The notes beneath the pieces are model-generated. The model was not told where the DNA came from. It searched no databases and was given only the letters and a program-made list of their open reading frames with translations. A stretch of DNA of 63,404 nt, counting the filler, from Scyliorhinus canicula (taxonomy: Eukaryota): NCBI RefSeq assembly GCF_902713615.1. It is 4 parts of 4 records of this genome, joined end to end, with 100 filler letters (N's around TTAATTAATTAA, not from the genome) between each part and the next. Parts side by side here need not be neighbours in the genome. Positions count along the whole stretch, not along the records: positions 1 to 30,026 come from NW_024056014.1; 3 more parts are not named here. The stretch is one strand, 5' to 3'. Below are positions 1,860 through 29,190 of the stretch, piece by piece. Both the position numbers and the translations under genes were made by a program. Numbering within the stretch: position 1 is the first letter of the stretch; the number at the start of each line of letters is the position of its first letter.

Positions 1860-3170
1860 TCGGTAGTAGGGAAGATGTTGGAATCTACCATCAAGAAAAA
1901 ATAGCGAGGCATCTGGATGGAAATTGGCCCATTCCGGCAGACGCAGCATGGGTTCATAAAGGGCAGGTCGTGCCTAACTAATTTCGTTAATTTTTTTGAG
2001 GACATTACCAGTGCGGTAGGTAGCTAGGAGCCAATGGATGTGGTATACCTGGATTTCCAGAAATTGACAAGATGCCACACAAAAGGTTGCTGCACAAGAT
2101 AAAGGTGCATGGCATTAAGGGTAAAGTAGTAGCATGGGTAGAGGATTGGTTAATTACTAGAAAGCAAAGAGTGGGGATTAATAGGTGTTTCTCTGGTTGG
2201 CCATCATTAGCTAGTGGTGTCCCTCAGGGACCAGTGCTGGGCCCACAATTGTTCACAATTTACATAGATGATTTGGAGTTGGGGACAGAGGGCAATGTGT
2301 CCAAGTTTGCAGACGACACTAAGATGAGTGGTAAAGACAAAAGTGCAGAGGATACCAAAAGTTTGCAGAGGGATTTGGATAGGTTAAGTGAATGGGCTAT
2401 GGTCTGGCAGATGGAATACAATGTTGGCAAATAAGAGGGTATCAATTTTGTTGAAATAACAGCAAAAGGAATATGATTTAAATGATAAAATATTAAAACA
2501 TGCTGCTGGTCAGGGAGACCTGCTAGTGGATGAGTCGCAAAAAGTTGGATACAGGTGCAACAGGTGATTAAGAAGGCAAATGGAATTTTGTCCTTCATTG
2601 CTAGAGGGATAGAGTTTAAGACTAGGGAGATTATGCTGCAATTGTATAAGGTTTTAGTGAGGCCACACCTGGAGTATTGTGCTCAGTTTTGGTCTCCTTA
2701 TCTGAGAAAGGACGTATTTGCGCTGGAGGGTGTGCAGAGGAGATTCACTAGGTTAATCCCAGATCTGAAGGGGTTGGATTACGGGGAGAGGTTGAGTAGG
2801 CTGGGACTGTACTCGTCGGAATTTAGAAGGATAAGGGGGATCTTATAGAAACATATAAAATTATGAAGGGAATAGATGATATAGATGCGGGCAGGTTGTT
2901 TCCACTGGCCGGAGAAAGCAGAACTAGGGGCCATAGCCTCAAAATAAGGGGAAGTAGATTCAGGGCTGAGTTTAAGAGGAACTTCTTCACCCAAAGGTTT
3001 GTGGATCTATGGAATTCCTTGCCCAGTGAAGCAGTGGAGGCGCCTTCATTAAATATTTTTAAGATAACGATCGATAGTTTTTTGAAGAATAAGAGGTTTA
3101 AGGGTTATGGTGTTCCGGCCGGCAAGTGGAGCTGAATCCACAATAGATCAGGTATGATCTCATTGAATGG
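1860..3170 (+). mobile_element. CR1-type LINE, 5'-truncated, degenerate RT and 3' end
   Basis: GVPQGPVLGPQLF, KFADDTK, LVRPHLEYCAQFW, TRGHSLKI and FFTQRFVDLWNSLP motifs spread over frameshifted ORFs. Confidence 0.9.
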
Positions 3171-4191: not shown

Positions 4192-4647
4192 ATGTTCATC
4201 CTCCTGGTTGTGTGGGGAGCATTACTGGCAGGTAATTTTATAATGCATCCGTTTCATCGTTGCAATCATGTCCAGCCCATGGTTTGAATTAAATATTAAA
4301 CATATGTTGTCCGATTTCGATACGTTTGTTTTTTCCAGATCTGAGCCATGGTGATTCTGTCACTCAGCCTATCTCCTCGGAGGTTAAGACAGAAGGAGGA
4401 GGGGTGACTTTAAACTGTACCTATGATACTACTTTGAGCAGCTATAGCTTACTCTGGTACCGACAACACCCAGCCACTCAGCCCACATATATAATCAGGA
4501 AAGATTCTGATGGTTATGAAGACAAAGCAGGTTTTGCTGAAGATCGTTTCTCTGTCGATCTCCAGACATCGAAGAAATTCATCAGTTTAAGTATATCGAG
4601 GCTGAAGCTGACTGACACTGCCGTGTATTATTGCGCTTTCTGGGACA
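4192..4647 (+). CDS. TCR alpha/delta V gene, intact: join(4192..4231,4339..4647)
   Basis: Leader MFILLVVWGALLA/gtaat; ttttccag acceptor; DSVTQ..TLNC..LLWYRQ..DTAVYYCAFWD. Confidence 0.93.
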
Positions 4648-4686
4648 CACAGTGATAAAAAGCAGCAGCATCCCAGTACAAAAACT
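4648..4686 (+). other. 23-RSS, canonical
   Basis: CACAGTG + 23 bp + ACAAAAACT. Confidence 0.95.
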
Positions 4687-5789
4687 GTAGGTGGAAACTG
4701 CAGACTGTTGAAGCATTTTGAGGATCGCGGTCTGCTGCAGCTAAATGAGCTGTCAACCACTCAGACACACAGAGAGGAAACCACATCAACCTCCCATCAA
4801 ACTGTCAACTAACTGTATCCAGAATGGGCTGAGAAAACAAACTGATGAACACAATCCGATGAACCGACATATCAGAGAATCATAATTTATTAGATTTCCT
4901 CCAATCCCCACTCTTTCTAACCTGCTGCGGTGTGAGACTGGCCTTTGGTGAGCAGAATGTCACTGAATGTCCATTACGAACTGTGGTACTATTTCCTTGC
5001 AAAAGCAAAAGTTTCATTATAACCAACAAAACTACCTGCACTGCAAGCATTTCATTATAACAAACAAACCCACCAACATTACAACCCTAATGCCAACCTA
5101 TTCCTAAACTACAACCTGCCCCAACCATAGTCTTAGAATAAGAGGTAGCAAATTTAAAACAGAGTTGAGGGGAAACTACTTCTCCCAAAGGGTTGTGAAT
5201 CTGGAATTCAATACCCCACATTGCGGTGGATGCTGTTACAGTGAGTACATTTAAGCTGGTGTTAGGCAGATTTTGAATTTGTAATGTGTTGAATGGTTAT
5301 GGAAAACGGGCAGAATGCTGGAGTTAAAGCCAGGATGAGATTAGCCATGATTGAATGTTCCCGTACTATGGATGCCACCACCACTGACAGCATTTGCTAC
5401 CCATTCCTAATTGCCATTGAACTGGATGGTCTATTCGGCTTTTCCAGAGGGCATTGTGTAAACCACATTGCTGGTTGTCAGTCTGGAATCACAAGTATGC
5501 CAGGCCAGGAAGAATGGCATATTTATTCCCTAACGGACAGTGACGAAGCAGCTTGTTCTCTGCAACACCCAATGCTAATTACGAGCTATCCATGACAGAG
5601 GCTGCCTTTCATTACCTAAATTCAATTACACAAGCTGCCATGATCGGATCTGAACCCCTGTTTCAGAACATTAGCCTAGCTCTAGATTACTTGTCCAGTG
5701 GCACTACACCTCCTTCTGTCGCGCGAACATTGTTTAATTATTAAAATACTTCATGACATCATGACGAGCTTTAGGCAAGCATTCCGAAT

Positions 5790-6270
5790 GCTGTCTTGCC
5801 TACCTTGTCCACAGGTCTTGCCACCTTTAAAGATCTGTGGACATGCACGCCCAGATCTCTCTGACTTTCTATATTTCTGAGAGTTTTGCCATTAACGGTA
5901 TGTTTCCCCTCTATATTAGACCTACCAAAATGCATTAACTCGCATCTGTGCTGATTAAACTCCATTTGCCATTTATCTGCCCAAGTCTCCAACCTATCTA
6001 TGTCCTGCTGTATGGTCGGACAATCCTCACCCATATCTGCCACTCCACCAACTTTGGTGTCATCCGCAAATTTACTAATCAGACCAGTTACATTTTCCTC
6101 CAATTCTTTTATGTACACTACAAACAATAGAGGCCCAAGCACCGATCCCTGTGGAACACCACTAGCCACAACCTTCCATTCAGAAAAACACCCTTCTACT
6201 GCTATCCTTTGCCTTCTGTGGCAGAGCCAGTTCTGTATCCATCCTGCCACCTCACCTCTGATCCCGTGTG
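5790..6270 (-). mobile_element. CR1-type LINE RT fragment
   Basis: GVPQGSVLGPLLF, SKFADDTK and WQMEFN motifs. Confidence 0.88.
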
Positions 6271-6499
6271 GCAGATAAAAAAACATTTTTAACGTTTGCG
6301 GAAAGAGCGGTGGGTGGGGGCAAATGATAGCCCTGTCATCTCTCAACACTGACACATTGTGCGTTAATTGCAGTATCCTTCAATGGTGCTATAATGAAGA
6401 GATGGAATTATTGTTTACTGATATCGCCCGTATCAAATTACTTTCTATTTATTTATTATGTGAAAGATTGGGTTATTCAGGTTCCATTAAATAACCTAG

Positions 6500-6773
6500 A
6501 TCATCAGCATTATTTGTGGAGAATGACTGAATGGTGTTGACCTGTTCGGACTCCACATACAGCCGCCGATATGATCTGCTCTGGTATCGACAAAATCTGG
6601 GGAACAGCCGGTATGTTTAAACAGAAGGAATCCTGATGGGGGACTAGAGAAAGTGGAGCATGCGGGAGACCGATTCCTTCAACACTCTGAGTATGAGTTG
6701 TACAGCTGAGTGACAGTGGGACCTTTTACTCTGTGCTGAATATTCACAGTGATAAAGGCCCCGTACAGAAACT
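6500..6773 (+). pseudogene. TCR V pseudogene with a 13-bp-spacer RSS
   Basis: VLTCSDST..DLLWYRQN, in-frame TAA, QLSDSGTFY, then CACAGTG (6745-6751) + 13 bp + ACAGAAACT (6765-6773). Confidence 0.75.
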
Positions 6774-8065: not shown

Positions 8066-8536
8066 ATGCAGATATTCAGAGCCTGGATTGTGTTTGGCCT
8101 ATTTATTGGCGGTCAGAATTACTCCAATCGTGTCACATTCAAACTAAAGTGTTAATATTGTTTAACTGGCACCATTTAATTCTTGATCTTGTCTTGTTCC
8201 TGAACTCTACACATCTGAGTGATGAAGATTCTGTTACTCAGCCCTAGGCATCGAAGAGTGGGAATAAAGGAATTCCGTGACTCTAAAATGACCTATAGTA
8301 CTACGGAAGAGGGTATTATATATATTGGTACTTGCAGCAACCAGCGAAGGAGCCCGTTTATTGTGTGGAGACGGTCTTGGGATGTTGTGGAGGTTCGGGA
8401 TTAGGAAATAATCCAGCTGTCAGACTCCGCTGGAAGTTTAAACGTCACGGAATTGCAGGCGATTAACACTGCCGTGTATTACTGCTCTCCCTGAGACTCA
8501 CACTGATATAAAACATGACCAGACTGTACAAAAACT
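8066..8536 (+). pseudogene. TCR alpha/delta V pseudogene
   Basis: Leader MQIFRAWIVFGLFIG/gtcag; acceptor AG mutated to AC; DSVTQP followed by a stop and frameshifts; YWYLQQ; TAVYYC; CACACTG + 22 bp + ACAAAAACT. Confidence 0.85.
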
Positions 8537-10899
8537 GCCTTCCGATTGAAACTGCAGTTCCTGGCTGTTGAGGTTGTCTAGAATCTGGGACTGAGGCTGA
8601 CAGCCACGCAAACACACAAGGAGCGGAAACCTATTGCTGCCCTGCTAATCCCTGCAATGGACTCTGGCAGTAATCACATCTCTGGACACCGTCTCTGTTT
8701 ATATTAATCTCGACCCTGTATCAATAAACAGGGCGGTAGACACTTTCACGTTTCAATTAATCTAGACTCTGGAACAGTCATCATTGTTCTAGATCCTGTC
8801 TCGGATTAAGTTAATGCACGCTCTATATCTGTAGCCACTGCGTTAAAATCTGCCTGGGTGTGGATTAATTCGACGCTGTCCGGTAATCATTGCACGAGGT
8901 TTCCTCCCACAGTCAAAATATGTGCAGGCTAGGTTGGTTGGCCCACAGTAATAAGATGTGCAGGTTAGATGGATTGACTATGATAAATTGTTCCTTAGTG
9001 TCAAAACCTTTGTTGGTTACGGGGATAGGGCCAGGGAGTTTTTTTATATCCGTTCACTGGACATCGCTGGCTGTGCCAGCATTTATTGCCCATCCCTAAT
9101 TGCCCTTGGATTTGTATTTGTTTATTGTCACATGTACCGAGGTACAGTGAAAATTATTTTTCTGCGAGCAGCTCAACAGATCATTAAGAACATGGGAAGA
9201 AAAGAGAATAAAAGAAAATACATAATAGGGCAACACAAGGTGCACAATGTAACTCCATAAACCCTTGAGGAGGCAGTTAAGAGCCAACCACATTGCTGTG
9301 GGTCTGGAATCACATATACTCCAGACCTGGTAAGGACGGCGGATTTCCTTCACTCAAGGGTATTATTGAACCAGATGGGCATGCACGACAATGGTTTCAT
9401 AGTCATTGATTACACTTTTAATTCCAGATTTGTATTGAAATCCGGAATTGAACTTGGGATCCAGCCCAGCAGTCTGAGTCTTTGGGTAACTAGTCCAGTG
9501 ATAATACCACTACACCACCGCCTTCCCCTAATACACGGCACCATTCATCGGCTGCAATTCCATTTTGGTTAAACGTCCGGTGGAGTGGGCGGAAGTAGGG
9601 TGCTCTCTCAGGGGGCCGAATGGCTTCTTTCTGTACTGTAGAAAATATATTTTACTGTACTGTACTGTACTGTAGAAAATATATACTGTACTGTAGAAAA
9701 TATAACCAGGGGCTGGTTTAGCTCACTCAGCTAAATCGCTGGCTTTTAAAGCAGACCAAGCAGGCCAGCTGCACGGTTCGGTTCCCGTACCACCCTCCCC
9801 GAACAGGCGCCGGAATGTGGCGACTAGGGGCTTTTCACAGTAACTTCATTGAAGCCTACTCGTGACAATAAGCGATTTTCATTTCATATTCCAGTCTCCG
9901 CATTTGTAGTGACTTCAATAGACCATTGTCTCAGCTTATATCAGTATCAGTATTTTCTGCAAGAGATCCTGCCTTGGTTTATATTAGACTCTGTATCAGT
10001 ACTCACTGCACTAGCCCCGGTGTCATGTTATAGCACCCAGCCCCTGTGTCACTGTTCAATGCACTAGGTCCTGTCTCCGGTAGATTTAATTCACGCCCTG
10101 TGTCAGTGATGACTGCACCAGGCTCTGCTTCAGTTTTTGTTAATGCTAATATTGGACGTAATCAAAGTCGACGTAAAGATGTATCTTCCGTGATTTTTAT
10201 GTGTTTGTTCAATCAGATATTTGTTTTAGGTAAAGAGAGGAAGGATTCAGAGTTTTCAGCATGGGATAGATTTGATCTGTGTGAACGAAGATTGAAGCAT
10301 TCCCAGAAGAGAGAGCTGGCTGGGACAGAATGACTCTCCAATCTCTTGTGTCTTTACTTATCCATTAGCATTTCACTCTGTCTTTTACCGTCATCCGATT
10401 TGATATTTGGCCACTCTTGTCTCTCATCCTATCTCGAACCTTTTCCACTTCTGATGGAGGATCATCCGCCTGAAACCTTAACCCTACTTCTCTCTCCACA
10501 GAGGCCAACTGACCTACTGAGGATTTCCAGCATTTTGTGGTCTGTTACAGAAGTGACAAAATGGGTGAACTGATCATGTTTAGTGATTGTTGATGGCTGC
10601 CGGTCATTTCCGTGCTGCACTTGTGGTTAGGACACGTCGCTTTCATGGCCGTGGCCCAAGTTCAGTGGCCGGCCGCAGAATTAGCTTTTTCTTTCTGTTG
10701 TCTGAGCGGTTGCAATTCGAAAATGTAAACCAGGATACGTCTGGAGAGTGAGGAACATGGTTGCTATTCCAACTGCACGTTATTTTCACCAGAATTGTAA
10801 AAGTTTGAGATTTATGAAGTGAAAATCATGCACAAATCGGAGGGGAATCTGAGACAAATCTGAGACAAATTTTCAACTCATCGCTGGGCACAGCCGAGG

Positions 10900-14869: not shown

Positions 14870-17800
14870 CTTTATTCATTTGCGGGATGTGGGAGTCGCT
14901 GGTTAGGCCAGCATTTATTGCCCATCCCTAGTTGCCCTTCAGAAGGCGGTGGTGAGTTGCCTTATTGAACCGCTGCTGTTCTTAAAGTACAGGTACACCC
15001 ACTGTGCTGTTAGGGAGGGAGTTTCAGGATGTTGCCTCAGCGACAGTGAAGGAGTGGCAATATATTTCCAAGTCAGGGTAGTGAGGAATTTGTAGGGATA
15101 TTCCTGGTGGTGGGGTCCCCAGGTATCTGCGCTCTTGTCCTTCTAGGTGATAGTGGTCGTGGGTTTGGAAGGTGTTGTCTAAGGAACCTTGGTAAGTTGC
15201 TGCAGTGCATCGTGTAGATGGTACACACGGCTGCCACTGTTTGTCGGTGTGGGGGGTTTGAATCTTTGGAAGGGAACAATCAAACGGTCTGCTTTGTCCT
15301 GAATGGTGTCAAGCTGATTGAGTGATGCTGGAGTTGCACTCATCTAGGCAAGCGGAGAGTATTCCATTTCACTTCTGGCGTGTGCCTTGCAGATGGTGGA
15401 CAGGCTTTGGGGGTGGGGTGGGGTGTTAAGAGATCAGTTACTCACCGTAGGACTCCGAGTCTTTGACCTGTCCTGGTACACACAGTATTAATGTAGCTAG
15501 TTCAGTTCAGGTTCTGATCAATGGTAACCCCCAGGATATTGATTGAGGTGGATTCAGCGGTGGTAATGCCATCGAATGTCATGGTGCAGTGCTTAGATAC
15601 TCTCTTGGAGAACATGGTCATTGCCTGGCACTTGTGTGCGCAAAGATAACTTGCCACTTGTCAGCCCAAGCCTGGATATTTTTACGGTCTTGCTACATTT
15701 GGGCATAGACTGCTTCATTATCTGAGGAGTCACGAATGGTGCTGAACATTGTGCAGTCATCCGCAAACATCCCCATCTCTGGAAGGGAGATAATTTATGA
15801 AACAGCTGATAGTTGGGCCCAGGGCACTACCCTGAGGAACTCCAGGCGGTGGAGTTCCCGGGTATCTGATGCACTTCTCCTTCGAGATACTAGTGGTCGT
15901 GCATTTGGAAGGTGTTGTCAATGAACCTTGGTGAGTCCCTGCAGTGCATCTTGCAGATGGTACACACGGCTGCCACTGTTCGTCGCTGGTGAGGGGCTTG
16001 AATATTTGTGGAAGTGGAAGCAATCACGCAGGCTCCTTTGTCCTACACGGTATCGAGTGATGACCTGGAAATTAGCTTATTGACCTCCAACCACCACAAC
16101 CATCTTCCTTTGTGCCAGGTTTGACTTCAACCAGCGAAGACACACACCGCCACCCCCCCCCCCCCCCCCGATTCCCATTGACTCCAGTTTTGCTATGGTT
16201 CCTTGATGCCATACTCGGTCAAATACTGCCTTGATGTCAAGGGCAGTCATTCTCCCCTCACCTCTCGCATTCAGCTCTTTTGACCATATTTCAACCAAGG
16301 CTGTAATGAGGTCAGAAGCTGAGTGACCCTGGGGGAACCCAAACTGAGCCTCCCTGAGCAGGCAATTGCTGGGTAAGTACTGCTTGATAGCGCTGTTGAT
16401 GACTCCTTCCATCACTTTGCTGATGCTGGAGAGTAGTCTGATAGGGTGGTAATTGGGTGGATAGGGTTTGTCCTGTTTCTTGTTCACAACACACACGGGC
16501 AACTTTCTACATTACTGGGTAGTTGCAGGCTTACAGTTGTACTTGAACAGCTTGGGGGTGCGGCACGTTCTGGAGCACAAGTCTTCAGTACTATTGCCGG
16601 AATATTGTCGGGGCCCATAGCCTTTGCAGTGTCCAGTGCCGTCAGCCATTTTTTCGTATTGGCTGAAGACTGACATCTGTCATGCTGGGGACATGGACAT
16701 AGACATAGACGTAGAATTTACAATGCAGAAGGAGGCCATTTGGCCCATCGAGTCTGCACCGACGCTTCGAAAGGGAACCCTACTTGAGCTCAGACTTCAC
16801 CCTACCTATCCCCGTAATCCTCCGAATCTTTTTTGACACTAAGGGCAATTTAGCATGGCCAATCCACCTAACCTGCACATTTTTGTACTGTGGGAGGAAA
16901 CTGGAGCACGCGCAGAAACCCACGCAGACATGGAGAGAACATGCAGACTCTTCACAGACAGTGACGCATGCCAGGAATCGAACATGGGACACTGGAGCTG
17001 TGAAGCCGCAGTTCTAACCATTGAGATACCTTGCCGCCCCTTCATACCTCCGGAAGAGACTGAGATCGATCATCTACTCGGCACGTCTGGCTGAAAATTG
17101 TTGCGACTGCCTCGGACTTTGTATTTTGCACATATGTGCTGGGCTCCTCCATCATTGAGGATGAGGGTATTTGTGGAGTCTCCTCCTCAAGTAGTTGTTT
17201 AATTGTCCACCATCTTTCACGGCTGGATGTGGCAGGTTTACAGAGCTTAGATCTGATGTGTTCATTGTGAAATCGCTTATCTCTCTCTATTACTTGCTGC
17301 TTATGATGTTTGGCACACAAGTCGTCCTGTGTTGTAGCTTCATCGGGTAGACACCTCATTTTTTGGTATGCCTAGTGCAGCTCCTGGCATGCCCTCCTGC
17401 ACTCTTCATTGAACCAGAGATGATTCCCTGGCTTGGCGTTAATGGTAGAGTGGGGATATGCCGCACCATGTTTGTGGTTGCAGTTTGTGGTTGAGTACAA
17501 TTCTGCTGCTGCTGATGGCCCACAGTGCCCCATGGATGGCCAGTCTTGAGTTGCCAGATCAGTTCGAAGTCTTGGGCTGCACAGTAGCACAGTGATTTGC
17601 ACTGCTGCCTCACAGCTCCAGGGTCCTAGGTTCAATTCCAGCATCAGGTTACTACCTGTCTGGAGTTTGAATTTTCTCCCCATGTATGAGCAGGTTTCCT
17701 CTGGGTCCTCTGTTTCCCTGCCACTGTCCAAAGAACTGCAAGTTCGGTGGATTGGCCATGCTAAATTGCCCCTTAGTGTCCAAGCATTGGCTGGGGTTAC

Positions 17801-18140
17801 TGGGTTACGGGGATCGGGTGGAGGTGAAGGCTGAAGAGAGGTGCTCTTTCCAAAGGCCTGTGCAGAATCGATGGGTAGCATTGCCTCCTTCTGCACTGTA
17901 AATTCTCTGATTCTATGGTTGTATCCCATTTAGCACGGTGCTAGTGCCACACAACCCGATAGAGGCCATCCTCAATGTGTAGACACGACTTTGTCCACAC
18001 AAGGACTGTGCGATGGTCACTTCTGACGAAACTGCCATGCACCGATATACCTGCAGCAGGCAGATTGGTGAGGATGAGGCCGAGTATGTTTTTCCCTCTT
18101 GTTCCTTCCCTCCCCACCTGCTGCAGTCCCAGTCTTGCAG
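14870..18140 (-). mobile_element. Nested degenerate non-LTR retrotransposon fragments interrupted by SINEs
   Basis: NYHPIRLLSSISKVME, AQFGF, LDIKAVFDRVWHQG and GVPQGSALGP RT motifs; recurring LINE 3' end sequence. Confidence 0.8.
16690..17035 (-). mobile_element. V-SINE (HE1-like); other copies near 8890, 17570, 18145, 19600, 21715, 22652, 33920, 55512, 56020, 59063 and 61945
   Basis: tRNA-like head, central CTCCCCGTGTCTGCGTGGGTTTCCTCC domain, GGATTGGCCATGCTAAATTGCCCCTTAG block and short-repeat tail. Confidence 0.8.
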
Positions 18141-19799: not shown

Positions 19800-20220
19800 A
19801 CCCTGCCAGCTCAGTCTGCTGTGGTACTACTCAGCCATTCTTGGTGATCGACATTGAAGTCCCCGACCCAGATCATATTCTGCGCCATTGCTACCCTCAG
19901 TGTTTCCTGCAAGTGGCACTCATCATAGAGGAGTACTGATTCATCAGCCGATACTTCGTAATTAGCAGGAGGTTTCCTTGCCCAGTTTAAGCTGTCGCTA
20001 ATAGCCTTCATGTGGCCTAGAATCGATGTTGAGGACTCCCAGGGCAGCATTCTCCCGACTGTAAACCACTGTTCGGCACTTCTGCTGGGTCTGTCCTGCT
20101 GGTGAGGCAGGACATACCCAGTACGGATAGATCTGGTGATATTGAACGGATGCAGGCCAGTTTTAGTATGTACACGCGGATTGTAACCAAACTGCTGACA
20201 TTCCATTGAGCAGGACTTGT
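19800..20220 (-). mobile_element. LINE apurinic-endonuclease fragment
   Basis: IWVGDFNVDHQEWL APE motif. Confidence 0.7.
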
Positions 20221-20584: not shown

Positions 20585-20915
20585 GAACATAGAACAGTAC
20601 AGGCCCTTCGGCCCTCAATGTTGTGCCAAGCCATGATCACCCTACTCAAACCCACGTATCCACCCTATACCCATAACCCAACAACCCCCCCCTTAACCTT
20701 ACTTTTATTAGGACACTACGGGCAATTTAGCATGGCCAATCCACCTAACCCGCACATCTTTGGACTGTGGGAGGAAACCGGAGCACCCGGAGGAAACCCA
20801 CGCACACAGGGGGAAGATGTGCAGACTCCACACAGACAGTGACCCAGCCGGGAATCGAACCTGGGACCCTGGAGCTGTGAAGCATTTATGCTAACCACCA
20901 TGCTACCCTGCTGCC
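20585..20915 (-). mobile_element. V-SINE, young full-length copy
   Basis: Nearly identical to the copies at 56020-56356 and 59063-59448. Confidence 0.85.
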
Positions 20916-21316: not shown

Positions 21317-21333
21317 TATAAATCACCTATAAA
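21317..21333 (+). promoter_or_regulatory. Tandem TATA boxes upstream of the GPCR
   Basis: TATAAA at 21317 and 21328, 51-67 bp before the ATG. Confidence 0.55.
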
Positions 21334-21383
21334 TGTTGCATTGTCTTGTGTCATGCAGAACGCACCCAGAGCTCCTGGTAGAA

Positions 21384-21453
21384 ATGCATGTACCACCAAA
21401 AGGTCTGGTGTTTGCCATTTATTATCCTGTCCTTGCAGTTATCGGGGTTCCAG
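21384..21453 (+). CDS. GPR139/GPR142-like GPCR, exon 1
   Basis: MHVPPKGLVFAIYYPVLAVIGVP + G/gtaaag phase-1 donor; supplies the first part of TM1. Confidence 0.85.
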
Positions 21454-24140
21454 GTAAAGTATTGTAGTTTTAATTTTGTTATCATATAAATTACTTATTC
21501 GGCTGCACGATTTTCGAATTGTATCAGCAGCGTTTCCCCACGATTCAGTTTTCGTTTCTACGATTTCCTATCATACATTTAAACGTATGCATTCTTCCAG
21601 TCCACTGACAATTTTTCCTCTTTGATAGGATCATTTGATCAATTTTGACGTGATGATTTCATATTAATGGTATAATAACTTGCATCTAATGGCGCAGTTT
21701 CTTGGACCTAACGGTGAACTATAGAATTTACTGTGCAGTAGAGGGCCATCCGGGCCACCCAGTCTGCACAGGCCCTTGGAAAGAGCACCCGAATTAAGCT
21801 CACGCCTCCACTCTACCCGTAACCCAGTAACCCCACCAAAACTTTTCGGACACTCACTGGGCTAAATAGCTGGCTTTGAAAGCAGACAAAGGCAAGCCAG
21901 CAGAACGGTTCGATTCCCGTAACAGCCTCCCCGAACACGCGCCGGAATGTGGCGACTAGGGGCTTTTCACAGTAGCTTCATTTGAAGCCTGCTCGTGACA
22001 ATGAGCTATTTTATTTCATTTTTCAATTTAGCATGGCCAATCCAACTAACCTGCGCATCTTTGGACTGTGAGAGGAAAATGGACCACCCGAAAGAAATGT
22101 ACGCAGACACGGGGAGAAAGTGCAAATTCCACGCAGTCACCCGAGGCTGGAATTGAACCCGTGTCCCTAGAACTGTGAGGCAGCACTGCCAACCACTGTG
22201 CCACCGTGCCGCCCCTTAACAGGGTCTTTTCACCCCTTAAATGGAAGAGCGTTGTCAAATTATAATGTAACTCCTTCAACTGCGTGTTTTTATCTATGAT
22301 CTGTACCATGTTTTCGCTTCTGCTGCACCAGCGCCCCCCCCCTCCCCCCTGCCGCAACACTACATCCACCAGTCCAATTTACCGCTGCTATCTCAAGTTG
22401 GAAACGCAGTTATATTGTGTTCTTGAAATGCTATTATCGGAGGATTAACACAAAGTTATTATGTTGTAAATGTAGTTCGGTACTGCACTGACACAGCGTT
22501 CATCTGAATTTTCACTCAAATACCACAGCACAAATACAATTCAGTGGTGTTATTCGAATGGTGTTATTGAAGAATGACATGGTCATTCCAGTGCAAATGG
22601 TGTTAACGCTCCTATTGTAGTGCGTGAATTATCACATTGATACTCAGTGTGGGTGGCACGGGTAGCACAGTGGTTAGCACTGTTGCTTCCCTGCGCCAGG
22701 GGCCCGGGTTCGATTCACGGCTTGGGTCACTGTCTGTGTGGCGTCTGCATGTTCTCCCCATGTCTGCGTGGGTTTTCTCTGGGTGCGCCTCCCACTGTCA
22801 AAAGATGTGCGTGTTAGGTCACGCTAAAATGCGCCATAGTGTCCAAACATTAGGTGGGGTTACTGTTGAGGTGTGGGTTTAGGTCAGGTTGCTTTTCAGG
22901 GGTCGGCGTAGACTCGATGGCCACCTTTTGTATGAAAAAGTGAAAACTGCTTATTGTCACAAGCAGGCTTCAAATGAAGTTACTGTGAAAAGTCCTAGTC
23001 GCCGCATTCCGGCGCCTGTTCGGGGAGGCTGGTACGGGAATTGAACTGTGCTGCTGGCCTGCCGTAGTCTGCTTTCAAAGCTAGCTATTTGGCGCTGCGC
23101 TAAACCAGCCTCTGTCCTGTAAATTGTATGATTCTCAGTTATGAGGGTGTAATGTTAGAAATTTTGAGTTGCTGACATTGACAGTGATGGATTGATTCGT
23201 ATAAACGATCCAATATTTGAACAGATGGAATCATTGGTAATTTGCTGACTAACACAATAGAGCATGTTATTGAACAGACTTTATATGGCTTTATTTCAGT
23301 TTTTTGACAGAGGTGCGGGAATGTCAAATTTCAAAGGTGGCGATTTGGTGAAAGATGTCCCTAATTAACAGGGTACAGGGTGCTTTTTCCCTAGTCTCGA
23401 ACATTTACTGAACAAGCGGGCACTTCTCTCCATTACTTTTTTCACTGTGTTCTCTATGTTTACTGAGGCCCTATAACAGGCGGCATTTTTTGCATCAAAT
23501 GCAAATACTGCTGAGGTCAAATATCCCCTGCAGGTCATATTTGCTCACTGGTCCCCACAATGAGTGTAGCAACCTATCCATTTGTGACTTCGTCGGTAAT
23601 TACCAGATAATAGTCGACCGTAGGACTGCATCCTCTCAAACTTCCTTCTGGAAATTCAGAGAAACACCGATTTTCCATTCCCTATTGGATTGAAGATGGT
23701 TTTGGAGAAATTGACTGCAGGTGTTTCCAACAGTGAATAATTTAACCATAATTGATCAGATGGCACAACTTCTGAAATCGAGATAGCAGAATCTTTCCCG
23801 TTGAATTTTACAATGATCTCTTATGATTTCCTATTCAGTCTGTTCGATAATAGTTTGCTGACTACGCCTATGGCTGCTTTGATGGGATTTCGACGTATTA
23901 TTTTTCTCCATTATATTTCATTGTATTGTTATACAGTCCTATTTTGCTGTTTCAGCTTTCTTTTAAGTTCTGTGATTATTTTAGTGGAATCGGAAATACG
24001 GGATCACGTCGCAAACGTTTAAATTTCATGCACAATCTTGCTAAAGCGTAATTTTTTTCGAAGACGGGAAGACGACATGTTTTCTCTCGTGTTGTCTCAC
24101 ACATTCTCCGTTTCTTTTTCTCTCTTTGTTTCCATTACAG

Positions 24141-25051
24141 CTAATTTGGCAGTGATTGTGATCCTATATCGAAGAAGCTGTGGCCTCTCCACATGTATAG
24201 CTTACTACGTGGTGTCCATGGCGGTGACGGATCTCTTGGTCATTATCACAAGCGTGATATTAAGCCGGATTGCTGGTATTTATTTCCCAGGCAGTTTCCT
24301 GTCAATCACACCAATATGCAGTCTGCATGTTGCGATAATCTACGCAACAATTGACAGTTCTGCCTGGTTAACGGTTGCTTTCACCTTTGACCGATTTGTG
24401 GCCATTTGCTGCCAGAAGCTAAAAATAAAGTACTGCACGGAGAAGACAGCGGCATGGGTCATTGGGACTGTCTGCACATTGAGCTCCCTGAAAACTTCCT
24501 TTCTGTATTTTATTTATGAACCGTTGTACATAATTAATAACATTCCCTGGTTCTGCGTTATAAAACAATTATTTTACACATCTCCCGTATGGGATGCGTA
24601 CGATTTGTTTCGAACAATTTCAATGCCCTGTATCCCATTCATTCTGATTTTATTCTTCAATGTTCTGACTGTCAGACACATTCTAGCAGCCAATAGGGCC
24701 CGCAGGAGACTCCGGGCCCAGAGTAATGGAGAGAATCAGAGTGATCCAGAGATGGAGAAGCGAAGAAAGTCAATTGTTTTACTCTTTGCCATCTCAGGCA
24801 GTTTCATTCTCTTATATTCGTTATTTTTTGTCACGATCCTTTATGTCCGAATTGCAAAAGTTCCTTATTTCTCAGTTCCTGATATTAGTGAATCTTCATT
24901 TATCTTGGAGGAAAGTGGATATATGCTTCAGTTTTTGAGTTCTTGCATCAACCCTTTTATTTATGCAGGGACACAGAGCAATTTCAGAGCCGAGTTAAAG
25001 AATGCGGTGAATTATCCACTGAGATTATGCGTTAAATTGTTTAATATTTGA
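24141..25051 (+). CDS. GPR139/GPR142-like class A GPCR, exon 2 (spliced product 326 aa)
   Basis: Polypyrimidine tract + ag acceptor in matching phase; ANLAVIVIL, MAVTDLL, FTFDRFVAIC, ECL2 Cys, NPFIY; no stops. Confidence 0.92.
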
Positions 25052-25243
25052 TTATATATATATTGGAAAATGCATTTTTCATTAAACTCCAACAATTTCT
25101 CGAATTCTCAGTGCCTCACAAAGACTCCCTTCCCAGGTGCTCTTGTTCAGAGACATGTACACAATATGCCAATATAAGAATGCATCACCGGGAAAAAAAA
25201 AATCTCGTTTTGTAAACTGGATAATTTTCTTTGCAATGCACGT

Positions 25244-25996: not shown

Positions 25997-27680
25997 ACGC
26001 CGGCCCTAGGGTTGCTGGCGCCCCGGGCAAGCTGAACTTCGGCGCCCTTGCAAGTATAATCACGATGAAAAATCAGTGATCACAGCAAATAACTTACCGC
26101 TCAAGGACAAGATTCTTGTTGTTTTAATTGCTTCTCTGTCCGAATTTGCCAACGCAATTCAGCAAATTGCCATATTCGCCATTTGAGCGGTGCAGTTATT
26201 TTTAAAAGTTTGGGCTTTTTGTTCAAACTAGATCCGAAAATGTTTAACAACGCAGTGCAAGTTACCTCAACATATGCAGCAGAAAATAAAGCTATGAAAC
26301 GTGATGTAATGATTTTAGATACAGAATTGTACGGATCAGTAACACGTTTATTTCTAAAAGTCTGAAAATGGATTGTAATGATAACATTGTTCTATCGTGG
26401 TTTCATTATGGACAGCCAACTGTGGCAAACACACTAACTTTGAAAATACACTAAAAACGTACTTTGTTATAAGTGCACATATATCCCAACTAAAGCTAGC
26501 CTCGTTGTCCATAAAAGACAGAGGCAGATAATGTGGGAAGGTGTGGGCAGATGTGGAATGTCAAATAATACATGAGAGAAAAAATATGATTACGAATTTA
26601 ATCCACTCTGGTCAGTCCCCGCTTGAACATGGTGCCTGTTTTGTCGTGGTACAGAAGTATTTTTACCGATCGCCCGGGGAGAGAGAAAACACGTTTCCCT
26701 CAAGTGCTAAATGGACAACATTCCAACGTCCTGACGCCGAAGCAAACGTGTCCTCTTCTTTCCTCTTAGCACGATGTTAATTCATCAACCAAACTGGTGC
26801 TTTGCACAAAGAAGTTTCAAACATCTGTGTCTATATTAATGTGGAGATGGAACTGTGATGATACAAGGTGTAGTTATCATGTCGCGGATTTGTGTTAAAA
26901 CAAAGGAAGAAAACGATTCGTTGCAAATTTAAAACGCACAATTTTAATTCAACCCATTCCTGTATTCCCTCGCTTCCAAACATGCTTTGAACTTCGAAAG
27001 ACATTGCTTTTAGTCAGCACCAGGCTGTCAAAGGAGAACTGGTTTTAAAAAAACACATTGACAAACTGTTCGATTATAATTTCCGTAGTTCAGTCATTAA
27101 CCCCTCCCAGAATGATTTGGGATGGTCAAACTTTATGACATGATAATACGACAACATGGACACCGCCCAAAACATTTCTATTTTACTTTGGTGCTCAATT
27201 ACTTTTTAAATTTAAAAAACGCCAGTTAAATAAAATGTTTACCACCGGGAGACAAGCCTCACTGAGAGTTTCTCTTTGGGTGGGAGGGGGCGACGGAGAT
27301 CACAGGTTGCATTCTGTATTGATGGGAGTCTAGAATTAAATCTGGCAATTGCTAAAAACACAATATTTTCCTGTGCTGTTTTCCATGGGGACAGTTGGTT
27401 GAGTGGTAGATTTTAAAGAAACAAAGCTTAAGAGTTATTTCTTTACCCGGTCTCTGTTTCCACGTGTGCAGGCCTGCATTCATTAACGCAATTCCTCCAC
27501 ATTTCAACATCAATTCACAGGACAAACCCAGGAGCTGCATGAGGGAGAGAGAGAAAAAAAATCATGAATATTTAAGCTCCCTCGCTACCTTCCAACCAAA
27601 GGCATCACTCCTTGATGGCGCCCCCTAGCACATGGCGCCCCGGGCGACTGCCCGAGTTGCCGGTACCTTGAGCCGGTCCT
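25997..27680. mobile_element. Degenerate DNA transposon with GC-rich hAT-like ends
   Basis: GCCGGCCCTAGG..GGCGCCCCGGGC at the left; GGCGCCCCGGGC..GAGCCGGTCCT at the right (imperfect inverted ends); AT-rich interior with no intact ORF. Confidence 0.45.
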
Positions 27681-27839: not shown

Positions 27840-29190
27840 TGTAGTTTACATGGATTTCAGCAAAGTATTTGACAAGATGGGACATGGGAGACTTATAAGT
27901 GAAATTAAATGAAATGAAAATCGCTTATTTTCACGAGTAGGCTTCAAATGAAGTTACTGTGAAAAGCCCCTAGTCGCCACATTCCGGCACCTATTCGGGG
28001 AGGCTGCTACGGGAATCGAACCGTGCTTGCTGGCCTGCTTGGTCTGCTTTCAAAGCCAGCGATTTAACTGTGTATAAAGAAGACACAGGGGAATTTGATA
28101 AGGTGCATTCGAAGCTGGCTGAGCTGTAGGAAACAGAGGGCGATGACAGACGGCCGCTTTACTGACTAGACGCCGCGTCCAATGGCGTACCACAGGGATC
28201 TGTGCTGGGTGCCCTATTATTTGTTATTTATATAAATGTCTTAGATGACTATGTGGGCGTAGGATGAGTAAGTTTGCAGATGACACAAAAATAGGCCGGA
28301 TAGTTAACAGTGAGGCTGAAAGTCTTGGATTATAGGAAGATTACCGGACTACGGGCAGAAAAGTGGCAGATTTAATTTAATCCTGAAAATTTCGAGGTGT
28401 TAAACTTTGGCAGGAGCAATTTGACAAGGAAATATTAAATGAATGGCACAGCACTGGGAATTCTTGAGTAACAAAACGACCTTGGCTTGTTTGTAAATAA
28501 CTCTCTGAAGGCAGAAGGGCAGGTGAATAGGATGGTGAAAACGGCATATGGTACACTTGCCTTTATAAATCGTGGCATAGATTACAAAAGCAAGGAGATA
28601 GTGTTGGAGTTGTAGAGAACATTGGGTGAGGCCACAGCGGGAGTACTAGGTGCATTTCAGGTCGCCACTTTATAGGAAGGATGTGATTACACTGGAGCGG
28701 GTGCAGGGGCGTTTCACCAGGATGTTGCCTGGGATGGAACATTTTAGTTATGAAGAGAGGTTGGATCAGCTTGGGTTGTTTTTTTCTGTAGCAGAGAAGA
28801 CGGACGGACGGCCTGATTCAGGTGAACACGGTTATGAGGGGCAAGGGCAGGGTGGATGGGAGCAGCTGTTCCTCTTCGTTGAAGGACCAGTTACGAGGAG
28901 ACACAAGTTAAAGGTGAGGCGAAGGAGGTTTAGGGGGAATTTAAGGGAAACCTTTTTACCTAGAGGATGGTGACGGTCTGGAATCCACCTCCTGGGAGGG
29001 TGGTAGAGGCGAGTTGCCTCACATCCTTTAACAAGTACTTGGACGAGCACTTGGTGCATCTAAATATTCGAGGCTATGGGCCAAATGTTGACAAATGAGA
29101 TTGACATTGGCAAATGAAATGCCTTTCATGCGGTGGTGAAGAGTCGATGGGCCAAAGGGCATTTTCTGCAATGCATTGTTCTATGATTCT
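27840..29190 (+). mobile_element. CR1-type LINE fragment with SINE insertion
   Basis: GVPQGSVLG, KFADDTK, LERVQGRFTRMLPG and TRRHKLKV motifs. Confidence 0.85.

Follow-up and report, generated by a model that had tools for sequence, protein, structure and literature searches.

The window analysed here, the whole stretch of 63,404 nucleotides (nt; filler included) of DNA of the catshark Scyliorhinus canicula (RefSeq assembly GCF_902713615.1), is composed of four parts of four records joined end to end, with 100 filler letters between each part and the next. The first part (positions 1-30026, from NW_024056014.1) carries, at 21317-25051, a gene for a G protein-coupled receptor (GPCR) belonging to class A, located downstream of four variable (V) segments of antigen receptor genes. 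The GPCR gene is intact, consists of two coding exons, and is a real, selectively maintained gene. It is probably a functional member of an elasmobranch expansion of receptors related to GPR139, and its linkage to the V segments is most likely incidental.

Structure of the receptor gene

The only long open reading frame (ORF) listed in the feature region is 24038-25051 (+ strand, 337 amino acids (aa), TTG start), in agreement with the first-pass annotation of this DNA, according to which the ORF track displays exon 2 alone. This frame comprises exon 2 plus read-through from the end of the intron, so that the single-ORF view is incomplete and is corrected by a two-exon model with the following elements (TM, transmembrane helix):

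21317-21323 and 21329-21335, + strand: presumed core promoter, two TATAAAT boxes 12 nt apart and 49-67 nt 5' of the ATG
21384-21453, + strand: first coding exon, 70 nt long (23 codons and one additional nt), with the ATG at 21384
21454-24140, + strand: phase-1 intron, 2,687 nt, GT..AG, starting with GTAAAG and ending with a polypyrimidine tract and CAG
24141-25051, + strand: coding exon 2, 911 nt with the stop codon, encoding the remainder of TM1 through TM7 and helix 8
25081-25086, + strand: possible polyadenylation signal ATTAAA, identified by pattern scan 30 nt past the stop codon

The spliced coding sequence of 981 nt is translated into 326 aa followed by the stop codon. The product of exon 1, MHVPPKGLVFAIYYPVLAVIGVP, accounts for 23 residues, which make up the N-terminus, very short in this protein, and TM1 as far as its middle; the 3' end of this exon reads GGGGTTCCAG, with the donor GTAAAG, and at the acceptor (ttccattacag / CT at 24140/24141) a GCT (Ala) codon spans the junction. 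Exon 2 matches the Pfam family 7tm_1 (PF00001) with an E-value of 2.5e-24 and a score of 86.6 bits, compared to the cut-off of 30.5, over profile positions 2-260 of 260. The proposal of a 70-bp exon 1 about 2.7 kb upstream that is spliced in phase to yield a protein of 326 aa, which was put forward in the first-pass annotation, is borne out both by this translation and by the gene model from S. torazame (see below), and the tandem TATA boxes that were proposed along with it are indeed present. Downstream of ATTAAA, the next AATAAA in the pattern scan is at 26285. A single-exon model starting from the in-frame ATG at 24077 was rejected given that exon 1 is supported by the orthologues.

Orthologues in other sharks and selection

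The top database match is an S. torazame protein of 326 aa annotated as 'G-protein coupled receptor 15-like' (XP_072363804.1; 97% identity). Its N-terminus, MHVPPKGLVFAIYYPVLAVIGVP-A-NLAV, corresponds to the proposed exon 1 followed by the junction codon, and all 23 exon-1 residues are identical; with an independent gene model starting in exactly this way, chance does not account for the exon-1 call. The S. torazame orthologue spans 3,263 nt, and therefore also contains one intron of similar size; there are no called neighbours inside 10 kb. In a tree built from the studied gene and the 120 best of 2,101 homologue matches, the catshark gene and the S. torazame protein form a pair (SH-like approximate likelihood ratio test (SH-aLRT) support of 100), and the whale-shark (R. 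typus) protein XP_048475297.1, 'probable G-protein coupled receptor 139', is the sister to this pair (SH-aLRT 94).

The whale-shark protein also consists of 326 aa and is 74% identical to that of the catshark. In its locus, taken with 10 kb on either side (L001), exon 1 is 70 nt long, shows 82% DNA identity to the catshark exon and ends at the same donor (CCAG/GTAAAG), the phase-1 intron occupies the same position and is 3,469 nt long, and exon 2 is 911 nt. The context of the second TATA box, tataaatgt, is also found in the whale shark at the matching distance from the ATG (~55 nt; L001 about 9944-9954). Thus, the genes of S. torazame and R. typus, which are automatic predictions known from sequence alone, share with the S. 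canicula gene the length of 326 aa, the two exons, the intron within TM1 and the motifs.

The whale-shark sister gene is 23% diverged from the catshark gene in DNA, with a dN of 0.16 and a dS of 0.67-0.90, depending on the method. The resulting omega of about 0.18-0.26 indicates purifying selection; judging from these substitution rates, the receptor gene is under long-term purifying selection, with omega about 0.2. A collection of 15 billion proteins contained no S. canicula protein at least 90% identical to the product of this gene, and at the 90% level the S. torazame orthologue is the single member of its cluster. A protein model for the receptor gene therefore seems to be missing from the S. 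canicula annotation, whereas the gene is already predicted in S. torazame.

Family placement and relation to GPR139

The homologue search yielded 2,101 matches at E<=0.001. The best 120 of these are all from sharks, with the exception of one unnamed sequence, and show 58-97% identity, nearly all of them at least 67%. The name 'probable G-protein coupled receptor 139' is given to nearly all of these 120, many of which are encoded on single chromosomes of Heterodontus francisci. An exhaustive search retrieved 105 clusters at fifty percent identity with E<=1e-30; in the Atlas, there are 27 such clusters, the top three of which comprise 82-190 members each and carry the label 'probable GPR139'. 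Among the matches listed, nine whale-shark paralogues, including the sister gene, share one 11.7-Mb contig (NC_063373.1), and for S. canicula and S. torazame all copies of a species map to a single contig the size of a chromosome. The whale-shark locus also contains, 7 kb upstream of the sister gene, a pseudogene from this GPCR family (L001:2402-3031, + strand; several stops, 38% identity).

The catshark gene displays the characteristic features of the elasmobranch 'probable GPR139' family, namely a length of 325-327 aa, the N-terminal motif series MHxxPKGL-(F/Y)YP-GVPANL, the helix 8 motif TQSKFR and two coding exons split in TM1. It also contains the almost invariant intracellular loop (ICL) 3 of this family, SNGENQSDPEMEKRRKS.

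When compared to the PDB on its own, the catshark protein reaches only the melatonin receptor MT2 (8e-6), and human GPR139 is not reached by this single sequence at E<=1e-5. With a profile of 27 family members, human GPR139 comes first (9.6e-13, 51.2 bits), followed by TRHR (1.5e-12, 50.5 bits), the PrRP receptor (2e-11) and GPR15 (1.3e-9); GPR142 has no solved structure and so falls outside this comparison. The nearest relatives from outside the sharks are 'probable GPR139' proteins from the coelacanth, three salamanders and one teleost (31-33% identity); in salamanders, coelacanth and teleost these relatives are low-copy. For the coelacanth and newt proteins, human GPR139 is the clear first match in the PDB (1.8e-18 and 2.6e-13, respectively), and the next one is the neurotensin receptor at ~1e-10; behind the 1.8e-18 of GPR139, the following match stands at 2e-10. 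However, their scores to human GPR139 are just 53-70 bits, and they are therefore paralogues rather than orthologues of GPR139. These comparisons suggest an old vertebrate paralogue that is absent from the usual mammalian GPCR lists, and the shark genes can be read as an expanded branch of this old GPR139-related paralogue that lies outside the GPR139/GPR142 orthogroup. Of the designation 'GPR139/142-like' from the first-pass annotation, 'GPR139-like' remains a fair label for the nearest characterised relative, but does not extend to orthology with GPR139 or GPR142, GPR139 being barely ahead of TRHR.

Among the solved structures, human GPR139, a sensor of L-Trp and L-Phe, ranks first with the family profile (PDB 7VUG-7VUJ, 9M42). 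It has in common with the shark family the TM1 motif YY..L...G.PAN..vI.ILS, the DR(Y/F) motif, an alignment that extends from TM1 to helix 8, and short loops, and the coelacanth and salamander paralogues link the two. The shark family differs by the presence of LYSL in place of LWAP in TM6, by a much shorter N-terminus and by copy number: human GPR139 is a single gene whereas the shark family is very large (120 close matches were listed out of a total of 2,101).

Signalling motifs, the TM6 switch and variability

The assignment to class A follows from the match to the 7tm_1 profile and from the core micro-switches. The core signalling motifs of this class outside TM6 are all present, that is, N1.50, D2.50, the cysteines of position 3.25 and of extracellular loop (ECL) 2, DRF, NPFIY and the F-R of helix 8. 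The respective sites (N in GVPANL, D in TDLL, the cysteines in ITPICS and PWFC) are nearly invariant family-wide; in an alignment of 121 sequences, the D and R of DRF and the N of NPFIY are conserved in every one (121/121). In the catshark protein, DRF and NPFIY, both noted already in the first-pass annotation, are located at residues 107 and 294, respectively.

In TM6 of class A GPCRs, the CWxP motif is common, although not obligatory. The catshark receptor lacks this toggle and kink and has LYSL at 248-251 instead; in the alignment to human GPR139 (LWAP to LYSL), Trp241 is replaced by Tyr249 and Pro243 by Leu251. Mutagenesis literature on GPR139 describes W241 (Trp6.48), a residue of the ligand pocket, as important for agonists. 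The presence of Tyr and the absence of Pro in TM6 had been observed exactly in the first-pass annotation, but this is not a peculiarity of the gene but a family-wide trait. The toggle position 6.48 is occupied by Tyr in 100 of the 121 sequences, by Trp in 12 and by other residues in 9. At position 6.50, 94 sequences have Leu and 10 have Pro, with 111 sequences lacking Pro there. The W-x-P signature is kept in a divergent S. torazame paralogue and in a salamander relative, and its loss is therefore derived within the shark expansion.

The variability map was drawn from the 121 closest sequences and is thus biased to near relatives. In this map, column entropy peaks in the outer part of TM3 (residues 85-95), in TM4/ECL2, at the beginning of TM5, in the outer part of TM6 (250-256), in ECL3 and at the beginning of TM7, and is lowest in ICL1, TM2, ICL2 and TM7. 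Such a pattern suggests that the paralogues may differ in ligand specificity. The transmembrane pocket of the receptor would accommodate a small extracellular ligand, possibly an amino-acid- or peptide-like one by analogy with GPR139, and the receptor would signal through G proteins. Activation would proceed without the classical Trp6.48/Pro6.50 switch, with Tyr and Leu taking the place of these residues, and the differences among paralogues, which chiefly affect ECL2, ECL3 and the outer half of each of the helices TM3, TM4 and TM6, would underlie differences in ligand specificity.

V segments and the neighbourhood of the gene

The first part of the window contains four V segments, all on the + strand and all 5' of the GPCR gene (RSS, recombination signal sequence):

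350-679, + strand: V1, a VH-like V segment, coding to 640; Pfam V-set 1.9e-13
4192-4686, + strand: V2, an intact TRAV/TRDV-like V gene with a leader exon (4192-4231) and a V exon (4339-4647)
6470-6773, + strand: V pseudogene (V part about 6470-6744) with several stops and an RSS spacer shortened to 13 nt
8066-8536, + strand: V pseudogene (V to 8498) with a leader ATG at 8066 and stops and frameshifts in the V exon

The best solved relatives of V1 are V domains of antibody heavy chains and nanobodies. Its 23-spacer RSS consists of the heptamer AACAGTG (641-647) and the nonamer ACAAAAACT (671-679); the replacement of the first C of the heptamer by A is expected to result in weaker cleavage by RAG. 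V2 matches the Pfam V-set domain with 6.9e-15 and is followed by a canonical RSS (CACAGTG at 4648-4654, a 23-nt spacer and the nonamer at 4678-4686). Among single-domain PDB entries, the best matches of V2 are V domains from T-cell receptor (TCR) delta and alpha chains (71-73 bits), with an antibody heavy chain close at 70 bits. The homologue search with V2 returned two unnamed V-set proteins only; V2 shares 66% identity with a V-set protein of the bamboo shark, which is situated in a V array. The pseudogene at 8066-8536 retains an RSS with the heptamer CACACTG (8499-8505), a 22-nt spacer and the nonamer (8528-8536). The nonamer ACAAAAACT with a spacer of 22-23 nt is found in three of the four V segments.

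No joining (J)-like FGxG segment and no constant (C) exon was detected anywhere in the 30-kb piece. The tandem arrangement of the V segments, without J or C between them, points to a translocon TCR layout rather than to a shark immunoglobulin cluster. IgH-like V segments have been reported in shark TCR delta (PMC12227049), in agreement with the presence of a VH-like V beside a TRAV-like one.

The distance from the end of the last RSS (8536) to the TATA boxes is 12.8 kb, and the RSSs point toward the GPCR gene. The V segments and the GPCR gene are carried by the same piece, as stated in the first-pass annotation, and no N occurs in 1-30026 that might signal a misjoin between 9 and 21 kb, an interval filled with debris of long and short interspersed elements (LINEs and SINEs). 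The placement of the gene 'inside' the V region, in contrast, is not borne out within the piece: the V segments are confined to the 5' side of the gene, and nothing V-, J- or C-like is present at 25-30 kb. Between 8.6 and 30.0 kb only the GPCR gene and transposon fragments turned up, with neither V-like sequence nor an RSS, the piece ending 5 kb past the gene, and no further GPCR copies were found in the 30-kb piece. The intervals at 8.6-21.3 kb and 25.1-30.0 kb contain only LINE reverse-transcriptase fragments and SINE copies. The tRNA-derived SINE copies upstream of the gene and within its intron are at 20716-20910, 22024-22205 and about 22640-22880, and the LINE debris (RVT_1 fragments) is at 2072-3135, 5771-6355, 16077-17929, 19811-20206 and 28650-28973. 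The segment 6807-7250 is a TA/TATA-rich low-complexity microsatellite with spurious, overlapping ORFs on the minus strand.

Significance of the V linkage and alternative interpretations

A comparable arrangement is known in mammals, where olfactory receptor (OR) genes, namely human OR10G2 and OR4E2 and mouse Olfr1507-1509, are interspersed with the 5' TRAV genes TRAV1/TRAV2, in a synteny conserved across mammals (PMC4574546). As in the catshark, these are class A GPCR genes of a large multigene family; they are located between TCR alpha/delta V segments, and the catshark gene near V segments that are putatively of this type. However, the mammalian genes belong to a different GPCR family with single-exon coding, whereas in the catshark the V segments are on one side and the linkage is seen in one locus. 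None of the mammalian OR genes among the TRAV genes is a lymphocyte gene, and an immune function is not known for any of them (PMC4574546). In the whale shark, no V segment was found inside 10 kb on either side of the sister gene, a view narrower than the 13-21 kb spacing in the catshark. No GPCR was found in 30 kb of the bamboo-shark V array (8 kb of which is N), which is likewise narrower than the catshark spacing would call for. The literature search produced no paper that describes a GPCR gene within the TCR locus of a shark. Conserved linkage to V segments, which the first-pass annotation had named as a check by synteny, did not emerge within these narrow views. The position of the GPCR gene near the V segments is most likely incidental.

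In the first-pass annotation, the gene had been interpreted as a candidate lymphocyte receptor within the TCR V array that may share thymocyte enhancers and whose dosage would depend on its being deleted or inverted in V(D)J rearrangement. The four same-strand V segments 13-21 kb upstream, with their RSSs facing the gene, are compatible with such a role, as is the location of the gene in the interval that is deleted if the diversity (D), J and C elements are downstream. The name 'GPR15-like' automatically given to the S. torazame orthologue, GPR15 being a lymphocyte homing receptor, points in the same direction, but rests on the weak match to GPR15 (1.3e-9). This interpretation nevertheless appears extremely unlikely. 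The receptor gene possesses a TATA promoter of its own, which is kept in the whale shark, and the mammalian OR genes in a like position are not lymphocyte genes (PMC4574546). The whale-shark sister gene, with no V segment inside the ±10 kb, sits beside a pseudogene of its own family; the catshark gene is one of a great many paralogues that, among the matches listed, share single contigs; and no V, J or C follows downstream within the piece. If D, J and C are located downstream, the gene would be lost as a by-product in T cells whose receptors draw on these V segments or on more distal ones; but such a deletion would hit any gene in the interval, so that dosage dependent on rearrangement, as proposed in the first-pass annotation, is no evidence of function.

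It is also very unlikely that the gene is a silent or recently inactivated copy with a frame still open for want of time. The spliced transcript is a prediction, the region is rich in LINEs and SINEs, the family yields pseudogenes and the protein collection includes no S. canicula model for the gene, all of which would suit such a copy. This explanation is at odds with the omega of about 0.2 relative to the 23%-diverged whale-shark gene, with the equal length and motifs in the two catsharks, with the conservation of the splice sites and the TATA box, and with the occurrence of exon-2 words, without the intron, in four sequencing runs. These runs, which are of unspecified kind, come from one 2021 study, amount to about 250-300 million letters of contigs each, and contain 47-74% of the exon-2 words. 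The last 1 kb of the intron was found in nine runs, all of genomic DNA, and the four exon-2 runs are not among them. Exon-2 words without the adjacent intron fit a processed transcript, but do not prove one.

A somewhat less remote, but still doubtful, alternative is that the gene belongs to a chemosensory-type elasmobranch repertoire with fast turnover, a diversifying ligand pocket and expression in olfactory or other sensory tissue, its position next to TCR-type V segments mirroring that of the mammalian OR genes. The very large copy number, the lineage-specific bursts and the pseudogenes of the family are what such a repertoire would be expected to show, and so is the concentration of variability in the outer parts of TM3 and TM6, in TM4/ECL2, in ECL3 and where TM7 begins, combined with nearly invariant ICL1, ICL2, TM2, TM7 and signalling motifs. 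The very short N-terminus resembles that of odorant-type receptors. Furthermore, the canonical OR, TAAR and V1R repertoires of sharks are very small (PMC6368271). Against this alternative, the variability map carries the bias toward close sequences mentioned above, and large expansions of peptide and amine receptors occur in other animals, too. Chemoreceptors are lowly expressed in bulk tissue. A catshark 'brain & olfactory epithelium' library has no GPCR among its 50 most abundant/specific genes (PMC11979771), which weighs only weakly against a chemosensory role. Tentatively, the shark 'probable GPR139' genes could be viewed as a very large repertoire derived from an old paralogue, with a rewired TM6 switch and a diversifying pocket, that may serve chemosensation in animals with almost no odorant receptors of the classical kind.

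The interpretation of the gene as a functional member of the GPR139-related expansion, incidentally linked to V segments, itself has to be weighed against several points. The view of the linkage as incidental is based on the mammalian precedent and the ±10 kb around the whale-shark gene rather than on a chromosome-scale map; the splice junction 21453^24141 is a prediction; and the literature search on GPR139 combined with sharks, expansion or 'GPR139-like' returned nothing relevant on the shark family. With Trp6.48 and Pro6.50 lost, signalling could also, in principle, be atypical or weak.

Implications

The complete gene model replaces the view given by the ORF alone, and an immune interpretation is not needed. 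The linkage to the TCR locus matters only if it is conserved, in which case it would constitute a second case of GPCR genes amid TCR alpha/delta V segments; if the chemosensory interpretation is true, the catshark gene would show that GPCR genes of chemosensory type were neighbours of TCR alpha/delta V segments in sharks, just as in mammals. Should the family be sensory, it would bear on how sharks smell with few classical receptors. The catshark gene provides an entry point to a large elasmobranch receptor expansion that appears to evolve under purifying selection and in which the canonical TM6 switch is lost.

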